A DNA stretch of 64,000 nucleotides from Kudoa neothunni (taxonomy: Eukaryota > Animalia > Cnidaria), in contig OZ199840.1 in the NCBI GenBank assembly GCA_964304625.1, positions 7,757,744 to 7,821,743 on the forward strand, given 5' to 3'. Shown here piece after piece: positions 11,405-63,744 of this stretch. The translations under genes were made by a program, and so were the position numbers. Under the pieces are notes generated by a model. That model did not search any database, was not told where the DNA came from, and saw nothing but the letters and a program-made list of their open reading frames with translations. Position 1 is the stretch's first letter, and each line of letters begins with the position of its first letter.

Positions 11405-11934
11405 TTAATTGTAGCTTAAAATAATTATTGATAATTAAAAAATCATTTATATAAACGATTTTGGAAATACGGGATTGCACAAAGAATTAAGAAAAGTCTA
11501 TAAATTATATATGTTATTATAATATTTATGACATCTTTTTGTTTCATAAATGTTTCAATAAGTCTAGTAAAATCTAATTATACATAGGAATCATTCATCA
11601 GACATTCAACTCGAAACTTCCAAGTATTGTGAAACCTTAATTTGATATTTAAGTATAAATTTGTATATCAAAAATGAATTAATGGGAAATTTTTTCATTA
11701 ATATTTTGAATAACCCCCGAAAAATTGAATTAAAATGAATTAACGTGAAATGATTTTATCAAGTTCTCCAACTATGATTGTCGTGGACATCTCATGAAAT
11801 CGATTGCATTCGCATGATAAAATATATACTAAACAAAACGAATAAAAAATGTAAAAATTATTAGCTTAAAAATAATAAATTACAATATATCTTTTAAATA
11901 GTAATAAAATTAATCGACGAATGAGTCGATGAGC

Positions 11935-14900
11935 TCACAACTCGTAGGTATCGTCGTCGATGTTCCTTCTGTAAACTATTGACCCTATCACTGCCAGTAA
12001 TCCGGCCACAATTGGAATCATTGCGTAAACACTAAAACAGATCAGTTACGAAATATGGCATACTAGTTTACATGTATCTTCCAACAGACCTACAACAAAT
12101 TAAAAATATGTATTATCTACTTAAATTTACGAATTAATATTTTTTGCTGTTTTGTGGTCATGTTTTTCTTTGTTATCTACATTTTTCTTTAGTGTTAATT
12201 GATTTAAAATAAAAATATACTAAAATAAATGTAATTGCAAGAATTAATAAAGATATAATTACCCCCCTTCAACTTTCATAATTACTTTTTGGATTTCATC
12301 GTACACCTCAATATTGGTATATTCGCTCCTTACGTTATGCTCTTCTATAAATTTTCATATTACATGATCAATGGCAATGTAAAATTTACTAAAAATAACA
12401 TTCAACATACATTTAACTATTTATTTTTATTACCCTGTTGATTTCGAAATTTTCAAGTCTTCATCATATAAAATATTATTATTTTGGAGAAATTATTATA
12501 TTTCAAGATTGTAATTTACAAGGAATATCATGGACTCTATAAGTTGACAAGTCCTTTACTTTCACACTTAATTTATAATCCTTTTTCTTCGATAGCCCAT
12601 TGAGACTGATAACGCATCCATTGTCTGAACAATCCTCTTCGTCATTACACCATAGAACTAATGGTTCCTGTTTGTTTTCATCAGTTTTCTCATGTAGCAT
12701 GAATGGACATATAGGGGTACCTTCTTTTTTGTCAAAGGTTACGTTAATTTTTATATCACTATCTTTGTCGTATGTTAACGCAACCTTTGTCTCGATGTTA
12801 GCTATGAACCTTTATTATTAAAGATGAGAAAATATTTTTTACTTGTTGTAATATCAAATGTTTTCCCCCTTCTTCCATAAGATGGTTCGACGTATGCTTC
12901 GTAAGCAACACCCAATTCGAGATTTACTATTTTAAATGAACTATTGCATCTATTCTCGCAAACTCCGATTCCATCACATATAGCCATAAATTTTGGAGAC
13001 GTTTCAACCTTTCTTTTTAGATAAATTCTACATATTGGAAGTGAATTATCAGCTTGAAAGGGTGTCACCATAGCAGTGCCTGCTTTGGTCGCTATATTTG
13101 AATTTTCTACTTCAGTCAACTCAGTTCCACCAGCTAGATATTACGTAAAAAATTATGAGGATTGTAATTAGATTTTACTCGTTCTAAAAGCGATTTTTTT
13201 GACATAAGGTTGATTAAAACCAAGGTTTGTAATTGTTACTGAAATTAAATAATTTGTTCCTGCGGTCAGTTCCGAAATCGAATATGACTCATTACACTTA
13301 GAGTCACAAGCTTGATCGCTACACTGAGCTGTCGTTTCAGTAGATATAGTGTTCGCTCTACTTACTTTAATGATGCATGTTGGTTCAGTATCCCCTTGTT
13401 TAATTTTCGTGTATTCGTCTAAACCAGTAATTTTAACTCCAGCGTTAGTAATTCCACTCAATTCAATGTTTTTGTCTCCCCCTATGAAAAATTAAATTTA
13501 TAAAAAAATTAAGCATTACTTTTAAAATATTGTTTAAATCCATCAGAATCAAATCTTCGTTTAACAATTACACCAATTTTTTGATAGTCTCCTTTCAAAT
13601 TAATAGTAGTATCTTGACAAAGTTTGTAGCAGTCGTTTTCGTTATCTTTACAGACGTTCAAAACATTTTCTGTTTGATCTGCACCATTAGTATCCACCTC
13701 GAATACTTTTATTTGGCACATTTCATCGTTATATGGCCCAGGAAAAAATTTAATTTTAATTTGATTATTGTTATTTGCAACAGCTGCTAGAGAATAAATA
13801 ATCTCCGATTTTAGAGGAATAGTGCTATTCAGGAAGGTTGTATTCGTGAAATAGAATATTCCAGGCCACATAAGTGTTGAGTTAACTTTATAATAACTCA
13901 TGTATCTATCGACTGATAAAGTTGCGGTCTTATCTTCTATTGCATTTGAGTAACTTTTTACATTTAAATTATTCTTTGTCGTATCACTGGATGAGTCTAT
14001 TTGTCCGTCAGCATACATCACCCAATCGGTTTTTGAGTTGGTTTTATAGGCGAAACTGACTTTATCATTAACATGGCTTAGAGTATAAGTATGTTTTTGA
14101 TTGAAATCTATTAAATGATGGATAATATAAAACTATTGTAATTATAAAATGAAATAAGTTCATTTAATGTTTATTATTATTATTTACAATCCAAGAAAAA
14201 TAATTTATTATAGTTACCCATTATTAATGGAAAAACCCTAGCCTTTTTGCAGGTTTTTGCTTCTCCGTCTGTTTCGCCGTAACAAACTGATATATATCGA
14301 TCAATTTTAGAATTAACGTATCCTATATCGACATTATCTTTTGTGCATTCCATTATGCAAAAACTAGTGTCATCATTTGAGGAACAGACTGGTTTTATCA
14401 ATTCAGGATTAACGCCAAAATTTGATATTTTTACTGCACATTTATCATTATTTGGAAATCCCGACAAGGTAATTAATAATTTTCCAATTTCATCTGGAGA
14501 TTTCTGTGTAAGTTTTCCAGTTCGAGAAAATGCTAAGAATATATTACATAGAAAATTTAATTAATTCTACCGGGAATTGAAATTTTAAATGGTGAAGATT
14601 TTCTCTTTACATAAATCATTAGTCGATAATTATACTTGTTGTTGTAGAGCTTATCATCAAAATGAATATCTTTGCATTTTTTGTTGTTCTCATTATTAGT
14701 GTTCGATCCAATATCGCACTCAATACATGATTGTCGTATACGTGTTGGTGAAGCTACACGAAAATTACATTAGTAAAGATATTTTTATTACTATCATCTT
14801 TTTCGTGTACGTAAAATTGATAATAACAATTAATATCCTGATCTTCTAATCTTTGTATTGGTGTTATTATTAGTTTATTTGTTGTAGATTCAGACGAAAT

Positions 14901-17900
14901 ATTGAATTCAATTGAAGTTCCATCTATTTACAATATATATAACGATAAATAAAATTTATACCCGTTTTTTTATTTAAAATCGTTTTAATAGCATAGTTTC
15001 CACTAGGTACAATTTTTATAGCATAGTTAGTATCCGAATGCAACTTAACGATAGTAAACAATGCATTGCATTTATCCAAACATAATTTATTGTCTGAGCA
15101 TATGGCAGGATAATAATGTAGCGTATTTTCCTCTTTTACGTAAATTTTGCAAATATTTTCTAATCCAGAATTTGGTGTAAGTGTGAATCCATCCGAAGTT
15201 GGATTAACATTACTATCTTGAACAGAAAGAGTTTTTGATTGAGCTAAAAAATCTATTATATCATTTTAAAATATTAAAAATTACTTATTTTATGGTAGAA
15301 ATATTTCCTAGGCATATAATTTGACATATGCTTTATTGTTACCATAATATCATTCAACAAATCAGTTGGATTTGGTGTAATACTCATCAACCCAAAGTTA
15401 CATGGATTTATCTCGCTAACAGTTTTCCTCTCGGTTTCGCTAATTAATGGAGCATATGTATTCCAAGATTTCAACTCACATTCTACAGCAAGATCACTAT
15501 TTACATTACCATTTTCGTCCTTATTTTTATTGCTTATATTAATTTTTATTTTTCCACCGTCGGTCGACGTTGTTACAGGGACATCACTACCATGCTTCAC
15601 TAAAATATTTATTTTACTATACATTAATAAAACTTGTACATATATAAATGTTGTTTTGGTAGCTAACAGTGGGATCCATTCCTAATTTAAGAACGCGTAT
15701 TTTTACTGCTTTAACATCTACTGAAATATTTCCAAATGTAACGTTACTACACAAACTATAAACGCAGTTTGCGTTGTTCTCGCAAGCGTTTGAAAAAAAT
15801 CTATTAGGCGATGAGCTAGTCGCATCAATCCATTCAAAGGTGCATATTTCAGAAGGTTCTTCGTTAATCAATTTTATCGTCAGTTTATCGTTTGCATCAT
15901 TTACCGCTAATTCATAATAAAATCTGCTAAATACAGGTGCGTATTTTTTAATAAAAGAATTGTCGTAGAAATAGTGGAAGTCGAAATATTTTGAGCAACT
16001 TAAGTAGTAGTCTTCAACTAGTTCGTCGAATTGAATAGAATAACCGTCAGGGGTACAACTTAAGTCAGATTGAGTTCTAGAGAAGGAACATAGCTTTGTT
16101 TTATCCTTGTATCCATCGCAGCTTAAAGGGCATTTGTTTACAGAAAATTTGATTTTGTCTTCATGCAACGTTACTGTATGCGTTATCTCCTCATAATGAT
16201 CTTAAAAAAATTTAAAGAAATTACTAAAATTAATAATACCTATGTAATACGAAAAGACCCGCCCAGCAGTAAAAGTAACAGATTCTGGATTCGAATTTTT
16301 TGTTGTTCCTGTTGACTGTGGATTCTGAACAAATTTGTCGATAACGTAAAAAATATTTACACAAATTAAGTCGATAATTACTTTATCAGTATCTAATGTA
16401 AGCATCCCTGATGAACTAAAGTCAGGTGTTTTAGTTTCTAGATAAGTGACTGAAATATAATTTAGCTTATTTTGGTTATTATAATTAATAGAAAATTCTC
16501 CATTAAGCTGATTGCAAGTTTTTTTAATTTCCTTTTCATCATCACCACCACTCACATAATTAATGAATTCCTCATTAGATATTTTAATTGTGCATTCTTT
16601 ATCATTATTAGCGTACAAATCATTCTTGAATTTTGCGTTATACTCTTTCTTTTCCGAATCATATCGTATAATCATTTTTAGATCATCATAAACAGATTCC
16701 CCTAAAAAAATACATTTATTTTTTCTATTTATTTATTACTAAATATTTCAGTTTTCGATGGCAAAGCATAATCTGTATTAATTACAACTATTTCGTAAGC
16801 AATATCATGTGTGAGAGTTTCCCATTGAACATCTATCACATTAGATGTTACAGCGGGAGCACAATCGTTGTTCAAACAATCAAGTATCGTCGTTAAAGAT
16901 TCTTTTTCTATTATTATGAATTTCCAAGAATCTCCAAGGTTTCCATCTGGATAAGCAGACATTGTGACAGTCACTTTTTGCGAGTTATCATCACTTGATT
17001 TTCGTGCGTTTACAACGATCCCATTAGCTGTTTAAAATAATTATTATGCCATCATTTATATTGAATACTAGTAATTTGAGAGGTATCAGCACAGGTATAA
17101 CCTTTAGAGCAAACAGTGATTTTGTAGTTCGTTATTGGATTAAGGTTTACAATGGTAAAGGGACCAGCACAAGTATCAGAACAAAACATTTTTTGTTTAT
17201 TTTTTTCACATGTAGCAGGAAACTTTGATGCTTCGTTTTCAACGTCAAAATAGTATAGTTCACATATAGCACCACTATTAGACCCAGTAGCAAAAAGGTT
17301 GGCGATAGTTAGCGATAGTTGCGTATTTTCGGTATTAATATTAGTTGTTGTGATTGGATTTCCACTTTGAAATTCATTCCCTAATTAACCATCTAATTTA
17401 ACATTTAAATATCATATTACCATTAGTTTTAAAATAAAAGTATCGATGGTAATGTTTCACTTCAGGTGAATCTAAGGTTGTTAACCCCGTTATTTTAACT
17501 TTTAGAATGTATTCAGTTAACGGTGAAAGTCCTGTTATAGTTTTTTGAGCGAAACCGTTACAACCACCGTTACATGTTGCATCTTTGCCAACATTTTCAA
17601 TCCCAAAATGTTTTTCCATTATTTTTACTTCCGTAATCATTGCCCCCTCCACTGCAGTGCCACCTTCGTTTTTTTTCAAATCAGATAAATCAAGTTTTAC
17701 TTCGTCATTATTATTTGTATGGGTAACTGAAAGTTGATTACTATCAACTACAAAATCAATCAAAAATATAAAGAAATTAAATTAATACATGTCACAGTTT
17801 GAATAAATTCTTTTGATGTTGATTGACCAATTGATTTTACAAGTACTTGAGCGAATTTAAAAGCAATATCATGTAGCAATGTCGCTTTATAGCACGGCTG

Positions 17901-18840
17901 TAGGCATGGGCCAGCTTTATTTATACTTGAGCAATAGGACGAAAAGTGTGAATCGTTAATTTCTTTTATACCGAAGTAACATATCTTTGATGGTTCTGGG
18001 TTCTGTAGTTGTATTGTATAGTAATATTTCGAATTACGCTGTCCTTTTTTCCCTGTTGCAATAAACCAATCTTCAGCCGGTTTTTTAGGATTAAGAAATA
18101 TTTCAGGAGATTGATCATTGAATTCAACAAAATATTTTGGTTGATACGACTTTGTATGAAGAGTTATAGTTTTCACAGCGTAAAAGGCATTGTCGGAATC
18201 CAATTTAGTTTCTTCTTCACCGTCAATTTTGATAGAAAAGCCCTTATTAATTTTTCTTTTGGCGGAAACAGAAAATTGGTAATTATTCTTTACCACAGTA
18301 TGAACACTCTTTATATAAAGGTCTATCATATAATATTTTTAGAATAATAAATCTTATTTAAATACCTTTGACTTTAAATACCCTCTTAACAAGGCATCTT
18401 TCTACATCATCTTCGCTTTTCCCTTGACACCATCTTAAATATTTAATTTTCTTAAATGCATTGTAGTCAAACTTCATTTCGACTTTTTTGCAATCATAAA
18501 TGCATTGGTTTGAACCGTCAACAAGTTTAGCGTTAGCATTTAATATATCAGCAGTACAGGTTGGAATAGCTTTAAGTATCGAATTATCTTTATCATAATA
18601 CTGCAAAGCACATTTTCTGTGACTATTTTCAATGTTATATCCAGAAAAAGAGAAAATAAATTTTTTTGGGTCTGATTGAAAATTCTGTTTCATTATATTA
18701 TTATCAATATCGTGTGTAATGACAAATTTTCCCCCTAAAACTAACAAAAATTAGATATTATAAAGAATTAAAAAATTACTAGTAAAATACAAGATGCACA
18801 TTGTAGAAAAATACATGAACCTCTCTGATATTACTGTCAT
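11935..18840 (-). CDS. Large (~1,900 aa) type I membrane protein with ~16-18 tandem Cys-containing FN3-like modules; orphan
   Basis: About 22 exons, mostly phase 1. Signal-like N-terminus MTVISERFMYFSTMCILYFTILG (ATG 18840). FN3 E-F strand motifs TITGLSPLTEYILKV, VNLNPITNYKITV, SELTAGTNYLISV, VNLELGVAYEAYV, NGLSKKKDYKLSV. TM segment IVYAMIPIVAGLLAVIGSIVY and tail RRNIDDDTYEL* (stop 11935-11937). One junction near 12433 does not phase cleanly. Confidence 0.8.
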
Positions 18841-52508: not shown

Positions 52509-54856
52509 TCCATTAAGTAAGGTTTGTTGGGTCCTTTTGGGCCCCTGTTTAGGTGCCGTCTATAGAATTTAATATTGCGACTATTAACTAGTTAATTTCC
52601 ATATCAATATATATGTGGTCCTATTATTTAAAAATTATTTGTAAAGTTATTTATGATTTCTAAACATTTTAATATACATCTCTTTTCATCGGCCAGTACA
52701 GTTGCATATAATAGAACCATAACATAGGCTATACATCCGAAAAAATTTTTAATTTTTGTTTGTTCTCTTAAAACATATTGTCATTTAACCGTCTAAGTAC
52801 CTGTAATAGAAAATAATACATAAATACCAGTTAATATTCACGTTACAATAGTGGGCCGAAAAGGGAACGATAAACCCTCGAGACATGCAGATGCTAAGTG
52901 GGTTTAACATGGCTGACATTACTGAGTACATTAAACTAGGTGAAACAATCTGTGAACTTAGCGAAGATACTTTTGAAGAAGTTCCAGATATTGTAGCGCT
53001 TCCTCCAGATAATGTTGACGCCCTTACTGACTTGGAAGATAACTTATTTCCCATACAAGATAATATATTGGAAAATGATGACATCCCCGATGTTTCTGGG
53101 CGTGTCCAATTGTTTAAACTTCAAAAGCTAGAAACCAAAAGTGTTGTCAATTCAGTAATGTTAAATGGGAGGAGGTTTTACCGACCAATTCCTCTGAAAC
53201 AGTTAATAAATCTATCTCGAAACCCTCGATAGACGACGTATATAAAGGTAGATATCTTTCAAAATTAATTTGTATGATTTTTAGGTTCATTTGAAACGTT
53301 CAAAAAATTTTTGGATGACAGTGTTCTATTGCATATTGTAAAACAGTGGAATTTATATGCTCGATAGAAGAATAACGGTTCTTTCAACCTAACTTTGTCC
53401 GAATTGAAAACCTTCACTGGGATTTTAATTCTCTCAGGTTATCATATTCTACCAAGCCAAAAAATGTATTGGGAGACGAATGAAGATTCCGGAGTTACTA
53501 TTGTAAAAAAAGCTGACACTTAAAAGATTTAAAGAAATAAAAAGATATATCCATTTCAACAACAACGATTGTATCGATAAATCCGATAAGTTATTTAAGA
53601 TCAGACCTTTAGTAGAAAAACTAAACCAAAACTTCAAATCATTCGGGTTCTTTGAAAAAATTTTGTCCATAGGCGAACAAATGGTACCGTATTATGGAAT
53701 GCATTCGGCCAAGATGTTTCTAAAGGACAAGCCTGTTTGACTTTCTTTTAAACTTTGGATAATGGCTATCAAAAATGGTTACATTTACAGTTTTAAAATC
53801 TATTGTGGAAAACAAGAAACTAATAAAACCTATGATGGCTTAGGTGAAAGCGTGGTAATGAATTTTGTCGAGGAAATTGGTGATACCTCTGAGGTTGAAG
53901 TTTACTTTGACAATTTTTTCTCCTCGTACAGATTATTTAAACTTCTACAAGAAAACAAAGTAAATGCTACCGGTACAATTAGACTGAACCGGACAAATCG
54001 ATGTCCACTTCAGTCACCAAAACAGTTTTCAAAATTGCCAAGGGGTGCTTTTGAAGTTTATAGTTATAAACAGGGTGTTTTTTGTGTTCAATGGAATGAC
54101 ACAAAACCAGTGATACTGATGAGTAATTTTATGTCTTGTTTTCCTATTGGATCAGCTAAAAGATTCTCAAAAAAAGAAAAAAAATACATTAACATAACAC
54201 AACCAAAGATTGTTAGTGATTACAATGCGAATATGGGAGATGTCGATCTAGCTGATAACGCAATTGCAAATTACAGAATCAAAATAAAGGGTAAAAAATG
54301 GTGCTGGCCATTATTCATTAATCTTATTTCCATGTGTGTCACCAATTCATGGAAAATAATGCGCCACTTTAATGGCCCTACTATAACATTAATTCAACAT
54401 GCACGCGAAATTGTTGCCCATCTAATAACTCCACAACGGGGTTTAATTATGAGGAAGAGTTCTCGATTGCAGTTGAATATTTCAATGAATATATGTTCTG
54501 GAGTCGTACTTGTGAGTGATGCCAACAAAAGACGACTCAGATGTGTTGTGTGCCACAAGAAAACATACCTTTATTGTGAGGGGTGTTCATCGAGACTTCA
54601 TCTTAAATGTTCAAATACTTTTCATTCGGATAAATATATTTAAAAAAACTTGATTAATAAATTATATATTTGTGTTTTATTTCGCGCATGCACTTTCTCG
54701 GGAGTTTATTGGGTCCTTTTTGGCCCTTCAAAAAATTTGTTGTGTATCTCTCAGCTTTGTCATAATTTAAAAAATTTAAGATTATTTAGGCATTTTTGAA
54801 AAATACTCAACACATTTTATTTTTTTATAATTTTTAAATGGTAGAATTTTAATGGG
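52509..54856 (+). mobile_element. Full-length piggyBac transposon (inactive)
   Basis: TTAA|TCCATTAA...TTAATGGG|TTAA with an internal transposase. Confidence 0.85.
52885..54643 (+). pseudogene. piggyBac transposase pseudogene
   Basis: SIGEQMVPYYG (first catalytic D read as G), YFDNFFSS, MGDVDLAD and C-terminal Cys-rich domain CVVC..CEGC..H..C..H. Stops and frameshifts in the 5' half. Confidence 0.9.
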
Positions 54857-62380: not shown

Positions 62381-63744
62381 TAGGGTTTCCCATCTAACTC
62401 GGCACTTGTGCAACCAAACGCGGCACTTATGCAATTTAATCAAACACATCCTTTTAATAACACGAAAAAAGTTGATTTTAACATTCAAACCCATAATTAC
62501 TATCATCACTGTTATTTATTCTAATATTATCTCTCTGTGAGAAGGCCTTGTGATATAACCAAGCATTTTTCGATAGAACCCATCACAATGTGTGTTATTT
62601 CGCCTAAACATTCAGCAATAATTAATTTCAATGTTCTCGTCTTTACATTGCCTCCTTATTACTAAGTTTTTCCAGACAGAAAAAACGTTCTCAACAGGAT
62701 TGAGAAAGGGTGAATATGATGGAGGCAGGTATTTTACGATTAAATTTTCCGCACCAATTATGTCCTGACGACCCCCGTAGTGATGGATTTTTGCGTTATC
62801 CATAATAAATATTGGATCAAGGATCCCATTATTAAAACGGCTAGTTTTAAGCTCCAACAAGCAAGCTTTAAAGTCTTCGCCGGTTGCAGCCTTATCATGT
62901 ATTTTATTATAAATCACGTAATTTTTATTGACTGCAGAAACCACAGAAATATTCCTACTACTAGCGGCCGTTACAAAACAATGAGCTGACTTGCCTCTCA
63001 ATGAGCGTCCTCTCTTGGGTCGGGTAACTACAGAAAATCCCACTTCGTCCAAAAATATCAGGCTTTCATGCATTGACGTGATTTCTAGTTCCCGAAACAT
63101 TTCTGCATTTAGGAACCGTTTTTCTATTGTGGTAGAACAATTCCTCCTTTAAGGAACTCTTACAACACACTTGAGAGTGTAATGGAATTCTCCGATTACT
63201 CTATCGACTGTACTGAGGTATACGGTAACTCCAAATTCGTCCTGGAGCTTTTGTTTCAATTCTTTTAAAATGATTAATGAATTTTCATCAATCCAACAGA
63301 TTATTTTTTCATTCTGATCAATCGAAAGAAGTGATCGTTTGTCTCCCCCTCTGGGTTTTGGAGCAAGAGTGTCGTTGTTTCTAAACTTAGATAATATCGA
63401 CTAAACCGTGGATCTCGGTAACCTCATTTCTGAAGCAATATAACTATCAGTTTTTCTATCCAATCAAAAATTGCACATTTTCCCCTTAAATCGGCAGAGA
63501 TGGTTTTTCTTAGTTTCCTTTTAGGTTGCGTATTTGATGTCGATCTAGCCGAATCGAATTGCGCTGAAACTATACACTCTGAGTCACTTGAAACTTCGCA
63601 CACATTTAAATTCAATTAGATTAACAAAAATTTGTTCGAAATCAATGCGTAGCGTTAACCGAGAATGCGCCTTGAAATCTATATCTTGGTTGCAAAAGTG
63701 CCGCGTTTGGTTGCATAAGTGTCGAGTTAGATAGGGAAACCCTA
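62381..63744 (-). mobile_element. Tc1/IS630-like transposon, full length, inactive
   Basis: TA|TAGGGTTTCCCATCTAACTCGGCACTT...AAGTGTCGAGTTAGATAGGGAAACCCTA|TA, with TIRs of ~55 bp. Confidence 0.9.
62612..63615 (-). pseudogene. DDE_3-type (Tc1/IS630) transposase pseudogene
   Basis: IFLDEVGF, FIMDNAKIH and YLPPSYSPFLNPVENVFSVWK. The N-terminal HTH region is broken by stops and frameshifts. Confidence 0.88.

Follow-up and report, generated by a model that had tools for sequence, protein, structure and literature searches.

The closest described counterparts of the gene analysed here, which lies on the minus strand (18840-11935) of a 64,000-nucleotide stretch of the genome of the myxozoan Kudoa neothunni (contig OZ199840.1, positions 7,757,744 to 7,821,743; this whole stretch is called the window, and its numbering is used below), are the canonical arrays of fibronectin type III (FN3) domains, as found in fibronectin, tenascin, titin, Dscam and sDscam, the contactins and the LAR- and DEP-1-type receptor phosphatases. 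The product of the gene shares with them the seven-strand beta-sandwich of ~95-100 residues, the tyrosine corner, the tandem arrangement of the modules, symmetric phase-1 exons and the organisation of a type I membrane protein; whereas the canonical arrays are nearly Cys-free, however, its typical module carries four invariant Cys, lacks the B-strand Trp and scores below the Pfam fn3 threshold, and neither another domain type nor a catalytic tail is present. The apicomplexan 6-Cys (s48/45) and SRS proteins, lineage-specific, disulfide-stapled tandem beta-sandwiches making up expanded parasite surface families, offer a further parallel, and P230 is similarly long; these proteins are glycosylphosphatidylinositol-anchored or secreted and differ in fold and Cys pattern, whereas the window protein is anchored by a transmembrane helix, and none of its exons gives an s48/45 Pfam match at an expectation value (E) of 1 or less. 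Large type I surface families with a short conserved tail and a proposed role in immune evasion are represented by the Giardia-type VSPs and, among myxozoans, by the VSP/RIFIN-like families of Sphaerospora molnari (preprint 10.64898/2026.02.11.705288). VSPs are recognised there by a Cys content above 10% (or of at least 5%) and by at least 5-6 CXC or CXXC motifs (10.64898/2026.02.11.705288); the window protein, in contrast, has 3.5% Cys, one CXXC and no CXC in 1,844 residues, and adopts the FN3 fold instead. No FN3 family is mentioned in that work (10.64898/2026.02.11.705288), and no published description of a myxozoan FN3 family was found in the literature.

A sequence-only reading of the window had proposed one gene running from a signal peptide through ~16-18 modules, mostly single phase-1 exons, to a transmembrane helix and an 11-residue tail, and this architecture can now be given with exact coordinates. 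Sixteen minus-strand open reading frames (ORFs) chain into a single gene of ~6.9 kb and 20-21 exons, with the ATG at 18840 and the TGA stop at 11935-11937; the enumeration of GT..AG introns that keep the frame open led to one clear solution, composed of 17 large exons (exon 1 and E2-E17) followed by small stalk exons and the transmembrane exon. All 16 introns of the ectodomain, from exon 1 to E17, are GT..AG introns in phase 1 with GTA donors and a GC content of 10-22%; 15 of the 16 measure 38-45 nt and the remaining one 80 nt, and the length of each exon from E2 to E17 is divisible by 3. Together, E2-E17 encode 1,844 in-frame residues, including 64 Cys and 11 N-x-S/T sequons, and hold 18 modules, two each in E3, E8 and E14 and one split over E11 and E12. 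The exons are the following:

18780..18840, minus strand: exon 1, 20 codons with the ATG and a leader resembling a signal peptide, phase-1 donor
18366..18740, minus strand: E2, module 1, with four Cys and a further Cys pair in the F-G region
17789..18322, minus strand: E3, two modules, the first Cys-free, the second with four Cys
17421..17747, minus strand: E4, two-Cys module (C-x3-C)
17069..17380, minus strand: E5, four-Cys module with an extra pair of Cys in the F-G region; P0148, from a different sample, is a relative
16740..17027, minus strand: E6, two-Cys module, among the two most variable positions in the paralogs
16240..16701, minus strand: E7, 153 codons, the most divergent exon (paralog identity 31-47%)
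15640..16200, minus strand: E8, conserved double module (54-80% identity, low substitution ratio, see below), a hallmark common to the short-form subfamilies
15285..15599, minus strand: E9, two-Cys module
14962..15243, minus strand: E10, canonical four-Cys module
14792..14923, minus strand: E11, first portion of the module that a phase-1 intron divides
14571..14753, minus strand: E12, second part of the split module
14188..14532, minus strand: E13, four-Cys module with an extra pair of Cys in the F-G region; the 80-nt intron, the only long one of the ectodomain, comes next
13520..14107, minus strand: E14, two modules, the first Cys-free, the second with four Cys
13179..13481, minus strand: E15, canonical four-Cys FN3 module, used for folding
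12843..13133, minus strand: E16, canonical four-Cys module
12520..12801, minus strand: E17, last four-Cys module
12434..12458, minus strand: probable 25-nt micro-exon (phase 1 to 2), inferred; open and AG/GT-flanked in all five aligned paralogs
12263..12328, minus strand: probable 66-nt stalk exon, acceptor uncertain
12072..12089, minus strand: possible 18-nt micro-exon, frame-keeping and strongly conserved, inclusion uncertain
11935..12031, minus strand: last exon, with the transmembrane helix, the tail RRNIDDDTYEL and TGA; at least 51 matches elsewhere in the genome

At the 5' end, exon 1 encodes a hydrophobic leader of 20 residues (MTVISERFMYFSTMCILYFT), and in the paralogs it consists of the ATG, 15-20 mostly hydrophobic codons and a GTAAT donor at the aligned position. 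At the 3' end, the frame would be kept from E17 to the transmembrane exon solely via the conserved 25-nt micro-exon (12458-12434) and the 66-nt exon (12328-12263). The last exon carries the helix and the whole 11-residue tail, whose C-terminal DDD-x-Y-E-L is kept among the closest paralogs and may, speculatively, be a sorting or anchoring signal. Two further ORFs of this region, 12268-12176 (with a second transmembrane-like segment) and 12219-12130, were rejected as coding: in four of five paralogs the upstream exon cannot be joined to them in frame, and one paralog carries a 2-nt indel at this place. The model is supported by 14 other loci of the genome that carry these exons, E2 through the transmembrane exon, with order and spacing unchanged and at 31-80% identity per exon, and by the substitution ratio of 0.33 given below. 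The gene is intact and encodes a type I membrane protein of ~1,950-2,000 residues in which the signal peptide is followed by 18 beta-sandwich modules, a short stalk, a single transmembrane helix and an acidic, Tyr-containing tail. In DNA run X1, a G>A variant is present at window 12551, inside E17 (depth 4.4 of 15.4), and may represent an allele or a cross-mapping paralog.

Homology searches of the gene were all run exon by exon. The pattern C-x(16-21)-C-x(4-8)-C-x3-C, followed by L-x5-Y-x-x-x-V, is found in 10 modules, among them the three (E10, E16 and E15) from which the Cys signature had originally been read; the other modules have none or two of the four Cys. In an alignment (A2) that combines E15, 37 paralogous exons and three further modules of the gene, the four Cys together with I68, L71, Y77 and Y92 are invariant in all 41 modules, and AlphaFold2 returned from it an all-beta model with a predicted local distance difference test score (pLDDT) of 88.8 and a predicted TM-score of 0.79. 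Against the PDB, the top 50 Foldseek matches of the E15 model are FN3 domains without exception (sDscam, tenascin, Robo3, fibronectin, monobodies), as are the top 50 obtained with VIA, an independent all-against-representatives alignment (Z 9.1-10.8, root-mean-square deviation 2.0-3.2 A over 77-91 residues), while the ESM Atlas search with this module returned FN3 families only, at TM-scores of 0.65-0.72. The A2 profile likewise matches only FN3 proteins in the PDB, via the E-F strands (Dscam at 8e-5); against 1.84 billion representatives it retrieves 370 proteins, the best-ranked of those checked being canonical, nearly Cys-free FN3 arrays with E down to 6e-51. Pfam itself assigns no family above threshold to any exon: E15 misses the 25-bit fn3 cut-off (16.2 bits, E 0.013) and the other exons of the gene have no fn3 match, while 32 of the 41 aligned modules match fn3 below threshold at E<=0.1 (best 8e-6). 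The tyrosine corner is kept, in the E-F motif L-x5-Y-x-V-x-V, and no conserved B-strand Trp is found in A2, the B strand reading GV-x-L-x-GL. Because fold model, structural matches and profile homology all lead to FN3, the canonical module is, as its FN3-like strand pair had suggested, a divergent FN3 domain and not a new fold, and the four-Cys elaboration, absent from the canonical relatives, is specific to this family. One of the four Cys is located on strand C, while the other three lie in the C'-E region; they would form two disulfides per module, stiffening the loops at the BC/DE/FG end.

The gene is not alone in its genome. Within the 40.26 Mb searched, which include three large contigs of 17.2, 12.0 and 11.0 Mb, six-frame matches to E15 number at least 150, ~65 of them strong, and those to the transmembrane exon at least 51; with E8 (394 first-look candidates, 150 of which were scored), ~60 intact and ~9 broken long-form copies were found, as well as at least 80 further matches at 23-34% identity. 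These distant matches are short-form genes of 5-6 modules, in which a signal peptide, a four-Cys module, an E8-like double module and two or three more modules are followed by a stalk, a transmembrane helix and a short basic tail (YKKNKS) that differs from that of the long form; at G000:C2:9838000-9847999 such genes lie head-to-tail with a 4.4-kb period, a Pro/Thr/Ser/Asn-rich, mucin-like stalk preceding each helix. The long-form subfamily, whose copies are collinear, numbers at least 60, and with the shorter relatives the superfamily reaches at least 150 loci, many of them in tandem arrays. The loci occur on all three large contigs, in dense clusters near several contig ends (at 0.34-0.51 Mb and at 16.1-16.9 Mb on C1, at 0.1-0.6 Mb and at 9.0-10.8 Mb on C3) and also internally; the window copy is solitary. 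Several long-form paralogs are broken (L052, L055, L060 and G000:C2:9713554-9714105) by frameshifts, by multiple stops or through loss of the 5' half, and such copies make up ~14% of those of the E8 type.

Outside this genome, the 1.84 billion representatives yielded only five short fragments with the features of the family, from three public samples: P0017 from one Logan run, P0152 from another, and P0135, P0148 and P0151 from one ENA metagenome. P0148 shares no more than 62% identity with any copy in the genome, and one metagenome contig has 64-77% DNA identity to at least 53 loci, from which it follows that the family is present in at least one related organism. As far as the sequences searched extend, the four-Cys FN3 family is lineage-restricted, in agreement with the lineage specificity assumed in the sequence-only reading; the term orphan used there holds in that no Pfam family is assigned, and fails in that the gene is not unique.

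The ratio of nonsynonymous to synonymous substitution rates (dN/dS) is 0.33 when the window gene is compared with its nearest paralogs (dS 0.54-0.69) and lies between 0.34 and 0.58 in recent paralog pairs, so that the genes of the family are under constraint. In the recent pairs, stretches of up to 2.6 kb that are 100% identical adjoin blocks of 54-90% identity, and within one pair the exon-wise dS varies from 0 to 0.6, which indicates patchy gene conversion. Constraint is unevenly spread along the gene: it is strongest on E8 (dN/dS ~0.17-0.2) and weakest on E6 and E7 (~0.5-0.7), which have also diverged furthest. In modules of the E15 type, entropy and parsimony substitution counts peak in the BC loop (dN/dS 0.75) and in the Cys2-Cys3 stretch, which varies in length and where four sites change at 1.26-1.44 times the mean synonymous rate; established FN3 topology, rather than coordinates, would place these variable loops at the BC/DE/FG end.

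The long-form copies exchange segments by gene conversion and stay under overall purifying selection, and their variation is greatest in modules E6/E7 as well as in the BC and Cys loops. The protein would stand on the parasite plasma membrane as a rod of ~60 nm (18 x 3.5 nm), and the family would constitute a diversified surface coat, apparently the main one of the parasite, used for host attachment and/or antibody escape; the surface location, the host-interface role and the rod shape are all what we infer. That this collinear family of four-Cys FN3 rods is a coat or adhesin at the host interface, possibly antigenically variable, is the reading we favour, and we give it slightly better than an even chance. 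A stronger proposal, to be held only tentatively, is that the superfamily is a myxozoan antigenic-variation system, with hundreds of coat genes, BC and Cys loops behaving like complementarity-determining regions, E6/E7 reshuffled by segmental gene conversion and one or few copies expressed at once; a large paralogous repertoire with pseudogenes and segmental gene conversion, as expected of variant antigens, is indeed found. Several observations weigh against the coat reading or parts of it. No region has a dN/dS above 1, and the sites evolving at 1.2-1.5 times the mean synonymous rate, eight in total, come from an untested parsimony count. The disulfide connectivity is unreadable from the model, and the joint loss of Cys, suggestive of a 1-4/2-3 pairing in E7 and E9 (which keep the first and last) and in E6 (which keeps the middle two), is accompanied among 99 modules by 0011 and 1110 patterns as well. 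The signal peptide of the window copy is atypical, though hydrophobic; between the last module and the transmembrane exon the protein probably includes the 25-nt, the 66-nt and perhaps the 18-nt exon, their exact splicing being uncertain from sequence; and the E8 double module, folded with 40 relatives, gives two beta-rich domains at a pLDDT of only 66.8, a moderate model confidence. Finally, three raw metatranscriptomic runs bearing the same species label have no reads on the 6 kb of 11901-17900, which is no test of expression, and a DNA run covers this stretch unspliced; the gene model accordingly rests on the comparison of paralogs.

The same absence of reads, and the clearly broken state of some paralogs, could be taken to mean that the window holds several genes or a decaying pseudogene array and not one functional gene; with every exon open, introns uniform in phase and typical in length, the order from E2 to the transmembrane exon kept in 14 paralogs, the low dN/dS, and one signal peptide at the 5' end and one transmembrane helix at the 3' end, this is very improbable indeed. 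The main rival is an endogenous role in the multicellular organisation of the parasite itself, for example in cell-in-cell adhesion, in plasmodium or spore-valve assembly, or in self/non-self recognition of the kind known from cnidarian allorecognition. The copy number and the mosaicism would then be by-products of tandem duplication and not reflect a function directed at the host. An FN3 array with a transmembrane helix and a short tail is indeed typical of metazoan adhesion molecules, sDscam, NCAM, contactin and LAR are among the top structural matches, and an overall dN/dS below 1, a fixed exon order and a strongly conserved E8 would suit such a role; however, the hundreds of loci, the tandem arrays, the share of broken copies, the patchy gene conversion and the fast modules would be unusual for housekeeping adhesion genes, and among the 1.84 billion representatives relatives turn up in only three samples, so that we regard this role as possible but unlikely. 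Less probable still, and in our opinion rather doubtful, is a role as a signalling receptor, with an ectodomain that binds a ligand of the host or the parasite and a tail to which partners are recruited. Its attraction lies in the conserved end of the tail and in E8, which, like the class I cytokine-receptor module (EpoR, IL-4R, gp130), appears as an FN3-like pair with conserved Cys; indeed, the best Foldseek matches of the E8 model are tandem FN3/immunoglobulin pairs, those receptors and NCAM Ig5-FN1 among them. The likeness, however, amounts to a TM-score of ~0.3 on a model of the confidence given above, the E8 profile has no sequence match in the PDB and the ESM Atlas feature search with E8 gave no usable match; the WSxWS motif, which marks the membrane-proximal FN3 domain of those receptors, is found in no exon of the window gene, the 11-residue tail has no catalytic domain, and the short forms end in a different tail.

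Elsewhere in the window, a 293-aa ORF (53762-54643, plus strand) contains a piggyBac-type transposase domain, DDE_Tnp_1_7 (E 3e-37), and a 162-aa ORF (62612-63100, minus strand) a DDE_3 endonuclease domain of IS630/Tc1-like transposases (E 1e-23), while the window gave no match when scanned for Rfam families and tRNA genes. A 61-aa ORF situated ~1.6 kb upstream of where the window begins (G000:C3:7754000-7757743) has the pattern C-x3-C-x4-C-x3-C-x3-CC and resembles the cysteine-rich domain of minicollagens. The genome has a GC content of ~30% and introns of ~40 nt, and these traits, like the minicollagen-like motif, the three large contigs and the mitochondrial contig, fit a myxozoan; myxozoan karyotypes are usually 2n=8 and rarely 6 (preprint). 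On the mitochondrial contig (G000:C4; 18,219 bp, 43% GC), cox1 and a cytochrome-b-like ORF can be read only with TGA as Trp, and aragorn, in a default mode that could miss aberrant tRNAs, finds no tRNA gene. The ribosomal DNA locus (G000:C2:5424779-5428248) matches positions 1158-1823 of the eukaryotic small-subunit (SSU) model (the 3' 670 nt) and 5.8S, and the 5' two-thirds of the SSU was not detected there at the gathering threshold.

Myxozoans cause major diseases of fish. How they vary their antigens and attach to their hosts at the molecular level is, according to the literature, largely unknown. By virtue of its locus number, transmembrane anchoring, gene-conversion mosaics and fast-evolving loops, the family described here, with at least 150 membrane-anchored FN3 loci, is a concrete candidate for a surface coat, and it provides testable targets for antibodies, vaccines and studies of stage- and cell-specific expression. 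The four-Cys FN3 module is, moreover, a natural and presumably stapled scaffold with variable loops, relevant to the engineering of FN3 monobodies. If the superfamily does serve antigenic variation, an animal parasite would possess a variant coat based on FN3.

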